Origin: Convolutriloba macropyga
Lineage: Eukaryota
Direction: 5' to 3'
Length of the DNA stretch: 64,000 bases
Assembly (NCBI RefSeq): GCF_964194025.1
Contig: NC_134481.1
Location: 20,398,001 to 20,462,000 of the forward strand
The position numbers and the translations under genes were made by a program. Shown here in pieces: positions 1 to 42,800 of the stretch; within the stretch, counting starts at the first letter, position 1, and every line of letters starts with the position of its first letter. A model generated the notes under the pieces. That model ran no database searches and was not told where the DNA came from. It saw only the letters and a list, made by a program, of their open reading frames with translations.

Positions 1-305
1 ATTTTTTTCTAGAAGAACTGCGTGACGAAGTGTTTTAATTGAGTGGAACTGTTTGAGTTCGAAAAAAAACTACTTGACTAATTAACATTAATCAAAAATT
101 TGTGGGACAAAAAAATTATCCGAAATGGAACAAACTTCCAATTAGAACAATATTACTAAAAACTACTTCAAACATATGTTAAAACAATAATTTACTACTA
201 CCGCTGGAAAAAATATCGGATGTTTTGAAATTTATTTTACCATGTGCATAATCTCTTTTGTCTGTTTAAATTCAACCCAAGGATTATAAACTTAAATTTA
301 CCTAA

Positions 306-1520: not shown

Positions 1521-1855
1521 AGCAACGTATAAGTATAGCGTCTCTATATTAACGATCAATGCAACAAGTGAAACTTAGGCGGCAAGGTTTTTTCGATGCT
1601 CTTTTACTGGTTTTTGTCTGATGTTATTGACGTAAAATCAGTTCGTATTCAATCGGCAATTGTCTAGAAAATCTAAAAATATTAAGCCGAAAACCACCTC
1701 AATCGGTACATATCGTGGTTATATTTACTTAAAATTAGGTTAATTGAACTTTTTCGGAACTTTCTACGTATATTGGAACGTATTTAATTCATATTTTAAA
1801 GTTTAGAAATACTCGATTCTGATTGGCTAATAATTCCTCCATTTACTACGTAACA
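1521..1855 (-). repeat. 3' LTR of element 1 (truncated by the gap)
   Basis: Starts TGTTACG on - right after a purine-rich GGGCAGGAGGA tract; the pol stop lies inside it; near-identical copy at 11029-11355. Confidence 0.8.
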
Positions 1856-16936: not shown

Positions 16937-19900
16937 GTGACTCCGTCACAGAGTCAAGACATTTTGCAGAGACAGATTAGCAACTCCACAAAACAAATCG
17001 AAGCAAAAATTCAGGAGGGTCAGGAACTAATCAGAAACAACGATAGATCAAGCAAACTCAAGACCATCTATAAACAGGTGCTGAAACTTGACGACTCTCT
17101 TTGCATTCTTAACCGAAAGCGAGCAAATTTTCTTGGGGATTCTGAATTGTTTGAACGTTACGAAGCCGACCGACTAAATTTCTTGCAAACATTAAACGCA
17201 GATTGGTTACCATACATTCACGGAGAAACAAACATGACGGATGAACAGAATCAAACCGCACAATTGACAAGCGATGCAGAACCAACTGCCGCTAAGTCTT
17301 CACAGTCTGTTGTGGGAGTTTCTCAACAAACTGCTGAACATGGAAACCCAAACAGGGACAATGATTCAAAGGCCTTCTCTGATAAACGAGCTAAAAACGC
17401 AGAAAAGCTTGCGGGTCTAGAGAAAGACTTTGCATCAAAAATGAGGTTGAAGAAAATTGAATTCGAATTGAAAAGGAAGGAGCTTGAAATGGAGATGCAA
17501 CTTTTTGAAGAAGAAGGTGCACTGAAACTGGAATACGAGAAAGAAGCTCTTGACGCAAGAGCTTCAGATTCTGATGATAGTGCAGCCCCTAGTATGCGAA
17601 GTAGATCACCATTCAACTGGAAAACCCCGAAGAATAAAGATGTTTCCGGTTGGCTTGATAACTCGGATAAATTCTCCAACTTGCACGATCATAGTTTCGA
17701 GCGTTCAAAAAACAGGAGCGGCAACAATTATCCCAGGGTAAGCTTCAATCGTGAAGGTGTACTTAAATCACGGTCACCAAGTGGAGAGCGTGCCATCACA
17801 GCCCGGGAACAAGACAAGCTTAAGCGCAATAAACCAAGCAGTCAGCTACCTAAGTTGAAGTTGAGTTCTTTCGACGGAAACCCCCTAGAGTGGCCGGAGT
17901 GGTCGAATATGTTCAAAGCGACGGTTCACCATCGCGATATACCCGACTCAGAGAAAATGAGCCACTTGAAAACTTTGTTGACAGGTAAAGCAAAGTCAGC
18001 TATATCAGGAATGGGCTATTCGGGGGAATTCTACGCTCAAGCGTGGGAACTCCTGGGACGGAAGTTTGGGCGACCTTACCTAATTGTCGACGCTCAGCTT
18101 AACATGTTGCGCAAACAACAACCAATTCGAATGCACGACTCAACGGCTATAATTAATTACTCAAAAACAATCAGCAACCTAGTTAATGTACTGAAGCAAT
18201 ACAACTATGAGGGCGACCTGCAATCAAGTTCAACACTGCAAGTGGCAATTGAAAAATTGCCCCCAAACTTGAAAGAAAAATGGTTCTTTTTCGTTGACGA
18301 GTGTCAAGAAGATAGGCCCGATCTCACTCTCCTTGAAAAATGGTTAGCTCGAATGGCTTTTGTCCATGAAGGAATGCCATCAACCAAGAGCGAACGGAAG
18401 GAAGATGATCGACCAAACGCTAACAAAGAAAAACGTTTCTCAAAATCGTCAAATGTTACTGCGAGTTCGAATGCGAGCGAAACGAAGCAAATGCAAAACA
18501 ACAACTGCCCACTAGCGGATGGCACTCATAAAATATGGAACTGTCCAACATTTAAGAATATGAATGTCACCGATCGCTATGCAGCAGTGAGAAAAGAACG
18601 CTTATGCTATGGATGTCTGGGGAAAGGGCATGCAATCAAAGATTGTAAAGTCCACCCGTGCGGTATAAATGGATGTACCAAAAAGCACAACAGACTGCTA
18701 CACTCAGAAAACCAAATGGACGAGGGTAGTCACGCAGTTAATGTAAGCGCAGCAACAATCAACCAGAGTAACCAAGTTACTAGTTTTCTTCAAATAGTTC
18801 CGGTATCGGTTCAGAGCGGTGGTAACAGGTTGACTACCTACGCTTTCCTCGATAGTGGGTCAACAGTATCATTCATCGATCAAAGTGTCAAGGATCAACT
18901 ACAAGCCAAAGGCACGGACGTTACCTTGAACATAGCTGGCATACATGGGACGCAAGATTTGAGGACAGAGAAGGTTCCTATCACAATAAAGGGACTAAAT
19001 TCAAATGTGCATTCAATTGAAGCGTTTGCACACCCATCAATCTCGTTGGGAAACACAACATATGATTACAAGGAACTGAAGAACAACTTCAGACACCTGA
19101 ATGTTCTCACAAACAGAACATTCAACCTGATGGAAGTAGGCATCATACTTGGACAAGATGCCTACGAAATTCAACGTCCATTAGGCTATAAGATTGGAAC
19201 AAGAAGTGAGCCTTTCGCCGTCTTAACAGAATTAGGATGGGTAGTCAGTGCTCCCATGACAGGCAAGAAAAGTCAAAATGTTTGTCATTTTGCCTCCACA
19301 GAAGATGTGAAAGTGGCTGAAAATATACAATCATGGTGGGACATAGAAACCTATGCTTCCAAAATAAATGTTGTAAGTCAATCAAAGAAAGAGCAGCGAG
19401 CTCAGAAATTTCTAGAGAGCACGACAAAGTTTACAGGCGAGCGGTACGAAGTGGGCATGCTCTGGAGTGAACCAGAACCCAATCTCCCAAACAACTACGG
19501 CTCGGCCCTTGGTCAGCTCTACTCACTGGAACGAAGATTCCAACGAGACCCAAACTTAAAAGAATTGTATCAACAGTCAATTGATACAGATGTTGAAAAA
19601 GGATTTGTGAAGATCCTTGGCAAATCGGAAGTCAAAGGCACTTTCGGAAAGGAATGGTATTTGCCACACCATCCAGTACTAAACCCCAACAAACCGGGTA
19701 AAGTTCGCCGTGTTTGCAACGCTGCAGCAAAATACAAGGATATATGCCTAAATGACAAGTTGTTAGCCGGACCCGATCTACTACACGGATTGATCGGAAC
19801 AATATTCAGATTTCCAGAAGGACCAATTGCCCTAACCGCAGATATTGAATCAATGTTTCTGCAAGTGCAAGTTCCTGAACGGGATAAAAGCTGCTTGAGA

Positions 19901-36553: not shown

Positions 36554-36847
36554 ATGAATCAGTTTGATGCCTCGGGTGGGAGGAATCTTTACTCAAACCC
36601 CAGTTTATCAGTAGCAAGCCAGAGAACCTCAGAGATGGAGGGTATACCATATCGGATGTCGAGCATCAGGAGTACAACTACTGCAATAATAACTCCACAA
36701 GCGACAAAAAACGTAGCCAACGCTTACACAAGAGTTATGGATGAAGTTTGCAATACAGTTCGAGATACGTTTTTAGACGAAGGCGTTGAAATATCAGTTT
36801 TGCAAGAGCTTCGTAGGCTTTGGGAGAACAAAGTCTATGAATCGAAG
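36554..36847 (+). CDS. GTF2A1: TFIIA alpha/beta exon 1 (helical region I)
   Basis: VANAYTRVMDEVCNTVRDTFLDEGVEISVLQELRRLWENKVYESK, donor AAG|GTAAGA. Start codon uncertain (other ATGs at 36635 and 36656). Confidence 0.92.
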
Positions 36848-39800
36848 GTAAGAGTCAGTTACAGTAATTTTATTCCATCGGAACTCTCGAAATAAAATTG
36901 TTCTAAAACGAAGTTTTGCCTAACCGATTTTCGTCTGACCCATTTGACTTTTCGTCCTCAAAAAGGGGGATAAACAGGTAGCTCATGCTCCTTCAATTCA
37001 GCTAAAGCTAGCCTCACTAAATCGTAGCTAGCTACTGACAAAGCCAGCCGGTCGTTTGAGAGCAATTCGCCTGACGTTATTCGGTTATGTTTTTCCATTA
37101 TTAATAGCTGCGATAGCTGAGCGGAGCTATTATTGGCCTTATCGTGGTTTTCTTTACGACTGCGGGAGTTTTTTTTTACTCGCATGACTATATGTTAAGG
37201 CGGCGCTTTGGCCTAAAAGCGAAAGTAAAGTTGCCATGTGAATTTTGTGCGAAAGAATTTTTTTTACGTAAGGGTCTGACAGAACATATCAGTAAACATC
37301 CTTTTCTACCCTATTGCTTTAGCAATACAGATGTAGCAGTTGATCTTTGGTACCTGTGGCTACATGGAAGTTTCGAGGAATTCAAACCGCGGAAAACGAA
37401 ACAGACTGCAGCTTCCTCCATGGGTTACTCCGAACACGTCAAATATGCTAAAAAGAAGACGTCAGACGACGTTCAGAGCCTGGCAATGCCTCCTGGTTCT
37501 GCGCACCGCCAGGACTCCGAAGAAACTTCGAGGATTGACGGACCAAACGGAGGCAAATATATCCTGGATCTTTCCAGACTTCGAGACTGCTATTCGGGAA
37601 TTGCGCCGGCGGGTTTTTTTTCCTGGAGCAACCCATGCCAGCGACGCTGATCAGTGCTCTACTTCTAATTGCTGGCATAGAATCTAATCACGGACAGACA
37701 TTAGATGGCCATGTGGTATTTGCGGGAAGAATGCCACCAGAGGGTGCATTGGATGTGTAATATGCAGAAGATGGTTTCACTTCAACGGTGACACAAAGCC
37801 AAAGCAACCATGGTCCTGCCATGCATGTTCAACCACGAGCAAATGGCAATGTGGAGTATTTGAATTGAACGTAACTCTGCCATCGAATGAGTGAAGTGCA
37901 AGATATGGCATCACTACAGCTGCGTTGGGCAAATTAGTCATGAGACTCGATCATGGTTCTGTCAAAAGTGCAAAGACAAACCAACCAAGCCTTCTTTAGC
38001 AACGTTAAATATTCTACAACTGATCATCAACGGAATAAGGAAGAAGAAAGAAGAATTATCGATACAATGTTGACAAAGCTCTTCTACAGGACACCAAAAT
38101 CCCTCAAAGGTCGCAGATAGCTTTTGACGGATACAACGTCATTCGGAAAGAGAGAAACCAGAATGGGGGAGGAGTATGCACCCTGTTAAAAGATCTCAAG
38201 TACAGTGTGATTGACACTGAAGATGATCTTGAAATGCTGGTAGTGAACGTTCATGGAAAGGAAACGCTTCGAATGATTAACTACCAGCTTCCTCCGAATG
38301 TAAATGTCAACCCAAAACAATTATTCAAGAGCCAACCCGTCCCGACAGTTTGCTGCGGAGATGCCAATGCCCATAATTCTGTATGGAATTCAGAACTGCC
38401 TGGAGACGCTTGAGGTACTGAATGTGAAGAAGTGGTATCCGAAAGTAACCATGTTGTGCTTAATGAGGACGGACCAACCAGAAGAGCTCTGAATGGAAAT
38501 GAAAAGCATTTATGGCCTGATATTACAGCAGCGACAGAGGATATTGCAATCTGCGCATCCTGGAACATTGTCGACAATCATTTAAGTAATCATTATGCCA
38601 TACTAGTCACTAGCTGCTTAGACCCATTCCCCGTAGTGGGAAAACCAAAAGGAAAACACAAATTAACTTCAAAAAAGCTGACTCGAACCTCTTCACCCAA
38701 ACATTAGAGGATCTGCTTACTGAATACAAAATTCCGGATACAGTTGAAGGGTGAAAGAGTGCTCCGGGCAGCTGTTCTGAGAGCCCCTAAGCTAGCCATT
38801 CCTCATGGTCGCTATCACGAAATTACGATCAAAGTACCCAACGAAATAAGAGTTGGTCCTGCAACGTGACACATCAAAAGATAGAAGTGTAATCAAAGAA
38901 AATAACGACCAAATTCAATCCTTGTCCCAAAAACACAGAAGAGATCAGTGGATGGCGTACATTGAAAGTAATAGACATCTGACAACTGAAAAGAGTCCGC
39001 AAGGTCTAGTCACGTTGAAAAAAGCAAGCTGAAACGACAAAACAAAAGACTAGCGAAAAAGGTAGAAGGCGAAGACTTCATTATTTTGACTAAGATGATT
39101 GACGAAGCTCTAAAACTGACGAGCAACAGTAGAGCCCTGGGGCCAGATGGAATCACGAAAATGCATAAATAGAAGACAGGACCAATCGCTAGAAAATATC
39201 TAGCAGGACAGGCCACCTTTAGCTTTAGCTGCTGCAGGATACCGGCAATCTGGAAGCAAGCAATAGTAATTCCGTTGAAACCGGGGAAACCAGCGGATCA
39301 AGCATCCAGTTACAGACCGGTCAGCTTTCTCTCACACGTGGCACGCTTATTGGGAAGAATGCTACCTCTATTGACCTAGAGCATAGCTCTTCCTCATTTC
39401 CAACACGGCTTCAGAAAAAAACTCAACTACAACGTGATTAAGTGTGTTAACTGTGTTCTCTGCGGCTTTAATCAGAAGGGGACCACAACTAGAACTGTTG
39501 CTGTAGCCGTGGATCTTAAGCGTGTCTTCGATACGGTGAATCTCAACCTAACTGGAATAGAACAAAAAACGAATTTCGATAAAATCATGTCTCGAACGGG
39601 ATAGCTGAGAAGCGGGGTACCTTAAGGAGGTGTGATCTCACCTTTTCTCTTCTGCTGGTATCTGAAAGATATGCCTCAGCCGCGACGCAGCTTTAAAGTT
39701 GTCTGTTACGCTGATGACATAACTGTATACTGTTCTGACCTCTACTACAAAGAAGCTGTCCAAAAAATTAATGGTTACCTTAAAGATCCTAATACCTTCT

Positions 39801-42800
39801 TCCACAGAAAACCCTCGCCCTCAAAGGGCTCTGCCATTCTACTATCCACCTCCCACTCGGACTGGAAAGATTTATACGTTGTTCTGGGTACGTACCGGAT
39901 AAGAACAATCAATGACCTTACCCTGCTTGGAGTTAAGATTGATCACTCGCTGACCTTTAAAGATCATGTAAAAGATCTGGTTAAAAGAGCCTCTTTTAAA
40001 AGAGAAACTTATAAAAGGAAGGAAATGTTTTCCACTTTTGCACGAAATTTTGAAGAAACGTGCGAATTTGATTTGAAAATTCCGAAAGCGCAAAAGATCC
40101 TACACACCAAATTTGTGAAATCTACGATGAGAAACAGTGAACCCAACAGATTACGAAAAGAGCGTATTCTTCTCTCAAATGATTCCTCCAACTGCCCTCT
40201 GTTAGGAGACTTGAAGAAGAAAGTCAACGACGACCAACCAGATGCTTGCAGGAAATGTCATAGAGAGCGTGAAACAGTACCGCACATTGTTGAATGTATT
40301 GGCGGAATCAAGTGCAAAGATCTTTGGCGGTCCCCCGAGGAATCAGTCTCAAGGCTTGCAGAAATCTGGCCTAAACAACGACGTTCAGAGCGTCTCAAAG
40401 ACGACCCACGCAAGGAAACATGGAGGAATTTGCAGAATTGGATACATTTGTAGAATGCCGTCTGAATGACACCGAAAGGATTTCGAAAGATTTTTTTCAG
40501 AAAGAAAATTTTCTTAAAATACTCCTAAGTGTTAGGAATCGCACTTCTACCATCGCAATATATCTTGGAGAGAAGAAAGCCACAACCGACCTTGAAAAGC
40601 CTAACACCTTTAATGAGATTTTTCAATCGGTCGTCGTGGCATCTTTGGAGTATGAAAGTAAGCCAATTAAATCGGCTTCAATTCTTATTGACAAGGTTAA
40701 TTTTTTGGAGCTTGACGTAATGTTGATATTGGAAATTCTTGATGTGAATAAAGCTCTGGATGCCTTATGAAATCTTTAGCCTTCCTGCTTAATATTGTAG
40801 ATGAAGTACTGAAATGACAAACTTTTTGTGCAGATTCAGAAAATTATTAGTGCAGTGGAACATGGCTTCAGCAAAAAGAAGTCAGAAGTGATTCAAACTT
40901 TGCCCATCGAATAAGCATTTGGTGTGGTAGGAACATGATGAAGCTAAGCGTCAAATAATGCAAAGCGGTCTGTTCTAAAGAAGATATCTCGATAAAGTAG
41001 GGAAGTAAGATCCGGAAATCTTCAGAAAACCTGAGGTTTTGTTTCAAAAACCTGTCATGTAGCAATCAAGAGCAAACAAGATATGAGAGGTTTTTATATA
41101 ATTTAAACGGAATTTTGCATGGTCAAACCATTGGACATCGAAAAGAAAGAAGTTTCCAACGGGTCCAATCCCCAGCTAGCCCTTGGATTCTATCAACGAA
41201 AGATTTCTTTTACAGGGACTATCTCGGCTTAGTCTTCTATCATTGTCAATGCAACATGAGCTGTACGTTCTTCTTGTTCATTAAGTTTCTAACCGGCAAA
41301 TTATGCTGTATTGGCGTTGACATAGTTGAAATAGTTGAACCAATATGTTGAAATGGATAAACCAGAATGCCGAAACACGCGATCTGGCGATATCCCAGCT
41401 TAAAAAACTGAAATAATCGACAAGAAGTGTGTCCGCCTTGAGAACATCCTGGGAGCTAATCGGAAAAGAGCTGTACACGCCATCGAAAATTTCAGAAGTG
41501 TGATCACGGAGATACAAAGAAATGTTTTTCGAAAATTTGGACACTGATAATTATGCTTTCGGAGACTGATTGCAGTTGTTTGAACTGCAGAACATCAAGA
41601 AACTGACCTCTGACTTACTTGTACTCGGGAACTAACCATTCCCGTGTGATGTTACCAAAATCCACAATTACCCCTACGCTGTATAACGTAGCGACCGACT
41701 TCCATTAACTCCTGCATCCCGTTCCTCACTTTTTGACGGTAGGTGTTTTTTAAATTTAAAAACTGTTTACACAATCGATGGAGTTTTGTTCAATTTTTCA
41801 AAATTGTTCCTTGGATTTTGTTCTAGTCTTTTTCATGCTCCGTCAGGGATATTAGATAAGAGTTACTGATAATTCTGTTTTTTTTTATATTGCAAAGACA
41901 TAGTTATTTACAAGTTTATTCATAATGTCAAAGATTTTCTATAAAAGTAATGTTGGCGAAAGGTTTCAAAGATTCAACTGTTTAATTTTTTAGCTTTTTG
42001 TTTTGGCGACAAGATGTCTCAATGCATTTAATCAATCATCAAGGGCCAATGATTAAATTTCTTGTTATTGTACTATTTTTTAACATTGTTTTCAAATTGA
42101 TCTGCTTTCTGAGAAATTTCTTATGTCTAGGTTTCGTTTGAAATGAATTTTCGACTTTTCGTTTTTTGTCTTTTTCTTTTTAAATTTAAGTTTTGATAAT
42201 ATCATCAAAGGCTTTTCCTACCATCATTAATTTATGTTGCTGTATTTCTAGGTTTGAATTGCGGTTTTACCAAAATCGAGAGGGTTTGTTCTCTTATACA
42301 TTTTTCCGAGTTGCATTTTGGGACTTAATTTTTTTAGTTCAACTTCTCAGGTCATTATACAAATTGTGCGTAGTTTTTGTGGACTTCAGGTTCACATTGT
42401 ATTTTTCTCACTAACAGTAATTGACTCATAGTATGTTCCCAAGTTTTTTAGCGTGTTTTTGTTTTTAGCGGACATTGTGATTTGTTCTTTCGGTAGTGAT
42501 TCAGTTCTTTTTCGTAAGGGTTCTCAAGAAGCATGTAATGTTGCGTACTACAATGACGCTAACAATGAAATGTTTCTGTTTGCGACAGCTGATCGTTTTT
42601 AGTAACTATTGTAGTTAATGTCTAGCCAGAGAGGGTTGTTTTTCTACGAAAGGTCAATAGCGTTTACTCTCTTTTCTGAAGTTCATTTTTTTGCTTCATC
42701 CTTCCCTCTTTTGTAAATTATGGAAAACGAATTTGGTGCTCAGTTTTGTTGAGTTTTCTGCAATATTTGTAATAGTTTGATAGGTTGCTCGGGAAAGTCA

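Follow-up and report, generated by a model that had tools for sequence, protein, structure and literature searches.

Does the sequence at the head of a retrotransposon in an intron of the TFIIA large-subunit gene (TFIIA-L) of Convolutriloba macropyga fold, and did it once function, as a self-cleaving ribozyme? The element lies in a 64,000-nt stretch of contig NC_134481.1 (RefSeq assembly GCF_964194025.1, positions 20,398,001–20,462,000, forward strand), which we call the window and whose coordinates are used below. A first-pass annotation had proposed that a non-LTR retrotransposon begins precisely with a 77-nt fold resembling the hepatitis delta virus (HDV) ribozyme. On the basis of sequence comparison we conclude, with a probability of roughly 80%, that positions 37479–37554 are the 5′ ribozyme head of a long interspersed nuclear element (LINE), here an old copy that no longer codes for protein, and that this head would have been self-cleaving in the active lineage.

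The ends of the element are set by an 11-bp target-site duplication (TSD), GACGTTCAGAG, found at 37468–37478 on the left and as an exact repeat at 40380–40390 on the right. The inserted element is thus 37479–40379, with C37479 as its first base. The annotation had begun the motif at 37478, but G37478 belongs to the TSD as its last base, and the motif therefore starts at C37479; positions in the fold are numbered here as n = position minus 37478. A length of 77 nt is correct for most copies, whereas the window copy has 76 because one A is absent from its P4 insert. A search of the whole 1.18-Gb assembly gave eight copies of this element (family A), 85–91% alike. Their similarity starts at one common base in all eight, allowing for slight wear or mis-extension at the margin, and no relation between copies is seen upstream of it, which identifies the motif as the true 5′ end of the family. 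The annotation's placement of the fold at the very start of a non-LTR retrotransposon is borne out by this shared start and by the TSD that adjoins C1. We also note partial extra copies of the element's own first 10–15 nt just upstream of some full-length copies, direct in L007 (~1708–1737, minus strand) and L081 (~1472–1501) and inverted in L005 (~1466–1495); these may be products of template switching at the RNA 5′ end.

The window copy has the strand order of the HDV double pseudoknot, P1–P2–P3–P3′–P1′–P4–P4′–P2′ (Table 1). All 19 helix pairs are standard, as is an additional pair between U16 (U37494) and A69 (A37547) that forms across the bulged C70 (C37548). The P1, P2, P3 and L3 strands of the first-pass annotation are present in the sequence. 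Its P4 has to be redrawn: the CGAAG/CTTCG hairpin chosen for that helix belongs to a variable insert, absent from families B and D (below), and the conserved P4 is the basal stem TCCG/CGGA. The annotation had left both P1.1 and the catalytic cytosine unassigned. For the latter, comparison among families points to C37543 as the likely candidate; for P1.1 the difficulty stands, as only A36–U22 can form and the second position is mismatched in all families. Because A36 and U22 are invariant, P1.1 has no comparative support.

Table 1. Coordinates of the ribozyme fold, the LINE that carries it and the adjoining host exon in the window.
Feature	Window positions	n	Strand	Basis or remark
76-nt HDV-like ribozyme fold, with cleavage predicted 5′ of C37479	37479–37554		+	Descriptor, covariation, covariance model R1 (92.6 bits)
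P1 5′ strand CCUGGC	37479–37484	1–6/30–35	+	Partner GCCAGG 37508–37513; 6/6 pairs
J1/2		7–9		
P2 5′ strand GCCUCC (37488–93) and U16 (37494)	37488–37494	10–15/71–76	+	Partner GGAGGC 37549–37554
P3 GGU/ACC around 7-nt L3	37495–37507	17–19/27–29	+	GGT 37495–97, ACC 37505–07
L3 UCUGCGC, U first, G sixth	37498–37504	20–26	+	
A36–C37 following P1′	37514–37515	36–37	+	A36 is sole P1.1 candidate, with U22 (37500)
P4, basal stem UCCG/CGGA with 19-nt variable insert	37516–37542	38–41/61–64	+	UCCG 37516–19, CGGA 37539–42
J4/2 C-C-A-A (C-N-R-A)	37543–37546	65–68	+	C37543 (C65) is candidate catalytic cytosine
Left TSD GACGTTCAGAG	37468–37478		+	Exact repeat at 40380–40390; adjoins first base of element
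Start of open reading frame: AUG and a decayed 2A-like peptide (IAGIESNHG), with PHD-type fingers downstream of a frameshift	37635–37891		+	
Broken APE endonuclease and reverse transcriptase (YADD) frames, C-terminal Cys/His knuckle	38207–40378		+	
3′ end: (AAC)2 tail, then right TSD	40374–40390		+	TSD repeat; (AAC)n tails in other copies
TFIIA-L first coding exon, donor AAG/GTAAGA at 36847/36848	36725–36847		+	PF03153

Could a GC-rich 5′ untranslated region simply permit an HDV-like drawing? Topology alone is weak evidence: a loose, topology-only descriptor finds 99 and 64 start sites in the window, and first-order shuffled sequence yields about 64 matches per 64-kb strand. The nested minimum free energy (MFE) structure of the 76 nt is likewise ordinary (RNAfold, z = −1.3). 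A stricter descriptor that also demands U1 and G6 in L3 and a C-N-A-A junction lowers the expectation to 0.45 chance matches per 64-kb strand (~7e-6 per position), however, and its only match on the window plus strand is the 37479 motif, placed on the exact 5′ end of the family. The MFE structure employs a competing nested helix, 16–21/63–68, which shows no double change and no covariation and stands at the level of shuffled sequence, whereas the pseudoknotted architecture is shared by four families, and each of its four helices shows compensatory changes. A fortuitous resemblance is accordingly extremely improbable, and is effectively refuted by the cross-family covariation.

Other matches returned by these searches were set aside. 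A strict-descriptor match on the minus strand, at ~6662, is no more than chance would give, and a covariance-model match at 18359–18426 (E 5.8) has no P1 or P3. A genome pattern search with the P3–L3–P1′ stretch, allowing three mismatches, recovered mostly an unrelated ~70-nt satellite, GGTTCTACCCACCCCGAGGAC..., with no matching P1. This ~70-nt tandem satellite (TTTTCGGTTCTTCTGGGGTTTTACCCACCCCGAGGACCCC...) is present on many chromosomes (L049–L061; e.g. C4:54980458, C10:17146981, C16:45492793) and was matched by chance.

The covariation comes from three further LINE families in the same genome that have the same architecture at their 5′ ends. They were found by searching the genome with the PHD segment and then applying the descriptor upstream of the matches. 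The multi-copy families B (four copies) and C (six of seven copies) start at +1 of their own HDV-like folds. In family B the strands are P1 GCUUUU/GAAAGC, P2 GGUUGC/GCAACC, P3 GCG/CGC, L3 UCUACGU, P4 CCCA/UGGG and J4/2 CCAA. Family D is a single copy whose reverse transcriptase (RT) is 40% identical to that of family A; it has P1 GCUGGC/UCCAGC, P2 GUAUUC/GAGUAC, P3 GCG/CGU, L3 UCUUUGC, P4 UCCC/GGGA around a 5-nt loop and J4/2 CCAA. Its head was first spotted by eye and was then recovered at E 3.8e-4 by a covariance model built from families A and B alone. Family C, with copies 93–100% alike, has P1 GUUGGC/GCCAAC, a 7-bp P2, P3 CCG/CGG, L3 UAUACGC, P4 GCAGC/GUUGC and J4/2 CAGA; it was aligned by hand, with a manual parse of J4/2.

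In the alignment of families A and B, 90% of the cells pair, compared with 30–47% when the partner strands are slid, and 11 of 20 pairs are changed on both sides. With family D included the figures are 90%, 31–45% and again 11 of 20. Family D was added through a covariance model in which P2 was not modelled; P2 nevertheless remains 93% paired, and two of its positions show three pair types. RNAalifold also recovers P2 unaided. Changes on both sides between families affect three of the six P1 pairs and four of the seven P2 pairs, and the P4 stem covaries as well (UCCG, CCCA, UCCC, GCAGC) around an insert of 5–20 nt in the other families. The annotation had suggested an alignment of family copies to look for covariation; conserved and covarying pairing is found among families A, B and D. 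A smaller case is seen within family A: C11 is common to the window copy and L002, and the compensating G75 is present in the window alone, which argues for selection on P2 in the master copies. The same A+B covariance model also matches, over its full length, G000:C7:70074561-70074636 (+) with 60.9 bits and E 3e-6, ~2.8 kb upstream of a same-strand RT match. This site may represent a fifth family.

What remains constant while the helices drift is a core consisting of the 3-bp P3, the 7-nt L3 with U1 and G6, the A after P1′ and the C-N-R-A of J4/2. L3 can be written U-[C/A]-U-N-[C/U]-G-[C/U] in the four families; family A mostly has UCUACGC, and the window copy carries G at the fourth position. 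Counting back from P2′, a C at −6, a purine at −4 and an A at −3 are present in all four families, while P2 and P3 are separated by one base, whose partner is the nucleotide at −2 (U–A in A and C; G–C in B and D). C-N-R-A directly follows P4 in A, B and D and comes after two extra nucleotides (GA) in C.

Insertion starts provide a second line of evidence: in three families they fall on the site where cleavage is predicted. Three copies of family C have TSDs of 10–11 bp that adjoin G1, and the family ends in (GAA)n. Five copies of this family (L084–L088, e.g. L086:1501-2930) are internal-deletion derivatives, 0.7 to >1.6 kb long, which have both TSDs and (GAA)n tails. Each retains nt 1 to ~95, that is, the head and ~20 nt, joined to nested points of the 3′ body. 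The idea that these deletions keep the reading frame was rejected, since the frame is kept in only two of the five, as expected by chance. The retrotransposed RNAs therefore began at the predicted cleavage site, and in the derivatives the head has survived the loss of nearly all the rest.

These observations suggest the following mechanism. The element, which has no demonstrated promoter, would be transcribed within a longer host or read-through RNA, in which its head would adopt the nested double pseudoknot of the HDV type. The chain would then be cut just 5′ of C1 by C65 (37543), acting with a metal bound at the reverse-wobble U/G pair of L3. The released LINE RNA, starting at C1 with a 5′-OH, would be translated and reverse-transcribed, and full-length insertions would on this account begin at C1, directly after the target duplication.

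Several points weigh against self-cleavage: (i) P1.1 is at most one A–U pair, and that pair is invariant; (ii) P1 is 6 bp rather than 7 bp, and in family A it starts with C–G instead of the G·U of HDV; (iii) two extra nucleotides lie between J4/2 and P2′; (iv) no match to the HDV-type models of Rfam was obtained for the window region or for families A, B, C and D at E up to 10, although this is weak evidence because those models do not encode pseudoknots; (v) the covariation comes from few lineages (A, B, D and the hand-aligned C) and so represents few events, though many pairs; and (vi) an internal promoter starting at +1 would yield the same insertion ends. Because of this last point we infer, rather than observe, self-cleavage in the active lineage, and the same is true of the identity of the catalytic C and of any role in translation.

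The reduced P1.1 and the Rfam result would also fit a conserved pseudoknot whose function as a structured 5′ leader is a different one, self-cutting having been lost or never acquired. Such a leader might recruit ribosomes to an uncapped RNA or to an open reading frame (ORF) without AUG, be recognized by the element's own RT, or act at the DNA level as an internal promoter. Two of the families offer some encouragement. In family B (L078:1541-1760) the AUG that opens the ORF leading into 2A falls within the ribozyme fold, on the 3′ strand of P4, and family C (L082:1753 downward, minus strand) has a 1348-aa frame that is open from ribozyme nt 3, with no AUG before 2A (GDVEKNPGP); ORFs placed in this way tie the head to translation. 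In addition, the first 77 nt of the trypanosomatid element L1Tc are both promoter and ribozyme (PMC3383444). However, the features retained are those of a catalytic core (L3 U1/G6 and C-N-R-A after P4), the insertion ends fall on the predicted cleavage site, the L1Tc ribozyme (L1TcRz) is reported to be active with a single-pair P1.1 (PMC3185411), and the other roles can coexist with cleavage. We therefore regard a non-cleaving leader as quite unlikely and retain the interpretation of the head as a ribozyme that was self-cleaving in the active lineage.

How does this head compare with known ribozymes? The HDV genomic ribozyme has L3 UCCUCGC and C-G-A-A directly after P4. Family A shares its strand order and its 3-bp P3, with UCU(A/G)CGC in L3 and C-C-A-A in J4/2. 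The two differ in P1 (7 bp with a G1·U wobble in HDV, 6 bp without a wobble in family A), in P1.1 (two pairs in HDV, one in family A) and in the extra bulged pair that family A has between J4/2 and P2.

A close parallel in organization is L1TcRz/Pr77 of the L1Tc–ingi elements (PMC3185411, PMC4035085), a ~77-nt HDV-like fold at the exact 5′ end of a LINE with an apurinic-type endonuclease (APE), as here. L1TcRz shares the C1–G first pair and the single-pair P1.1 with family A, and resembles it in J4/2 (C-U-A-A, compared with C-C-A-A in the window). L1Tc, like the present families, also has a 2A peptide at the start of its ORF. The annotation had likened P1 of L1Tc to CCTGGC/GCCAGG, and this is sound: primer sequences give CCCUGGC/GCCAGGG for L1Tc (PMC4748587, PMC3185411). 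Its further step, that P1 identity is a retained Ingi/Vingi hallmark, does not follow as readily. The sister families have GCUUUU, GCUGGC and GUUGGC in P1, so the resemblance is weak evidence. There is no sequence likeness to L1Tc outside this helix. Family A differs from L1Tc in having PHD fingers, in lacking RNase H and in ending with (AAC)n instead of poly(A). Promoter activity and cleavage have been shown for L1Tc, whereas for family A cleavage is predicted.

HDV-like ribozymes also head R2, RTE, baggins and other metazoan LINEs (PMC6765202, PMC5786205). These heads have the same position and the same variable P4 as the one described here and the same inferred job, namely co-transcript release, a precise 5′ end and possibly an aid to translation. 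The window element differs from R2, RTE and baggins in belonging to another LINE lineage, with a 2A–PHD front. The head-keeping internal-deletion derivatives of family C have parallels in NARTc, RIME and SIDER of L1Tc–ingi and in the R2 SIDEs. The mammalian CPEB3 ribozyme is similar to the window case in being an HDV-like fold in sense orientation in an intron of a protein-coding gene, but it is a conserved single-copy host feature, whereas the window ribozyme is a transposon passenger with no sign of host conservation.

The body of the element is an old, coding-dead copy of a ~2.9-kb APE-type LINE, with shattered reading frames. Family A has a single ORF of ~910 aa, which extends just ~250 aa beyond YADD; this stretch holds a Cys/His knuckle and leaves no room for RNase H, the domain expected of Ingi. 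Copies of the family end in (AAC)n with 2 to >12 units. In most of them (3′ ends of L011–L036) a TAA stop codon lies ~8 nt before (AAC)n; in the window one C is lost at 40340–40379 and the frame runs into the flank. Families B, C and D have an intact 2A (NPGP). Family C encodes RNase H (PF00075, E 2.6e-13) together with APE, PHD and the canonical 2A, and its RT tail is only 30% identical to that of family A over 50 aa, which makes the two distantly related.

Can family A be assigned to a clade? Vingi elements are ~3 kb long, with a single 993-aa ORF, no RNase H and internal-deletion derivatives (PMC3708506, PMC5786205). Family A agrees in size, in its single ORF and in the lack of RNase H, but these traits are not exclusive to Vingi, and derivatives are seen in family C only. 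The order 2A–PHD–APE–RT has been assigned to CR1/Crack-type elements, and 2A directly before APE to Ingi (Odon et al., PMC3708506); the front of family A matches the CR1/Crack-type layout. A putative Ingi/Vingi label for family A is plausible.

The host gene is identified by a PF03153 match at 36725–36856 (profile positions 2–45, 54.5 bits); further TFIIA-L exons follow at 56.8 and 59.9 kb, and all of these are plus-strand features. Downstream of the first coding exon, 630 nt into the intron, the element is inserted in sense orientation, in agreement with the placement in TFIIA intron 1 proposed earlier. In this exon (36554–36847) an unusually long N-terminal extension is found in open frame before the conserved TFIIA N-terminal helix.

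The element is probably a passenger in this intron, and it is an even call whether a head that worked in the active lineage is now, in the intronic copy, inert in vivo and irrelevant to TFIIA-L, perhaps through misfolding in its intronic surroundings or because splicing is faster. The copy is old, as judged from the 85–91% similarity within the family and the shattered ORF, it has G where most copies have A at L3 position 4, its P4 insert also departs from the majority, and its MFE fold pairs 16–21 with 63–68, which would block P3 and the J4/2 junction. On the other hand, its 19 helix pairs and U16–A69 are intact, making it the best-preserved head of the eight, and L3 position 4 varies between families (A, U, G). 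The suspicion that this copy may be dead is therefore not indicated by the sequence, in which every core pair is intact, and the window copy could still cut the TFIIA-L intron RNA.

HDV-like heads on LINEs are already well known, and what is added here is a lineage with a 2A–PHD front. In searchable papers the pairing of ribozyme and 2A is described only for L1Tc of T. cruzi. A more ambitious proposal, which we consider doubtful, is that trypanosomatid Ingi/L1Tc and these 2A–PHD LINEs share a single conserved module for expression, made up of the ribozyme head together with the 2A leader. In such a module the ribozyme would yield an uncapped RNA, translation would begin inside or just after the fold, and 2A would rid the protein of the junk leader that results from translating ribozyme sequence. 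Should family A prove to be Vingi, such a module would go back to the ancestor shared by the Ingi/Vingi group, and one clade would be added to the six listed as ribozyme-headed. The four natural variants, with their clean compensatory changes, constitute a bench-test set for a core with minimal P1.1. The derivatives of family C agree with Kojima's observation that ribozyme-headed clades spawn internal-deletion derivatives composed of 5′ and 3′ ends.

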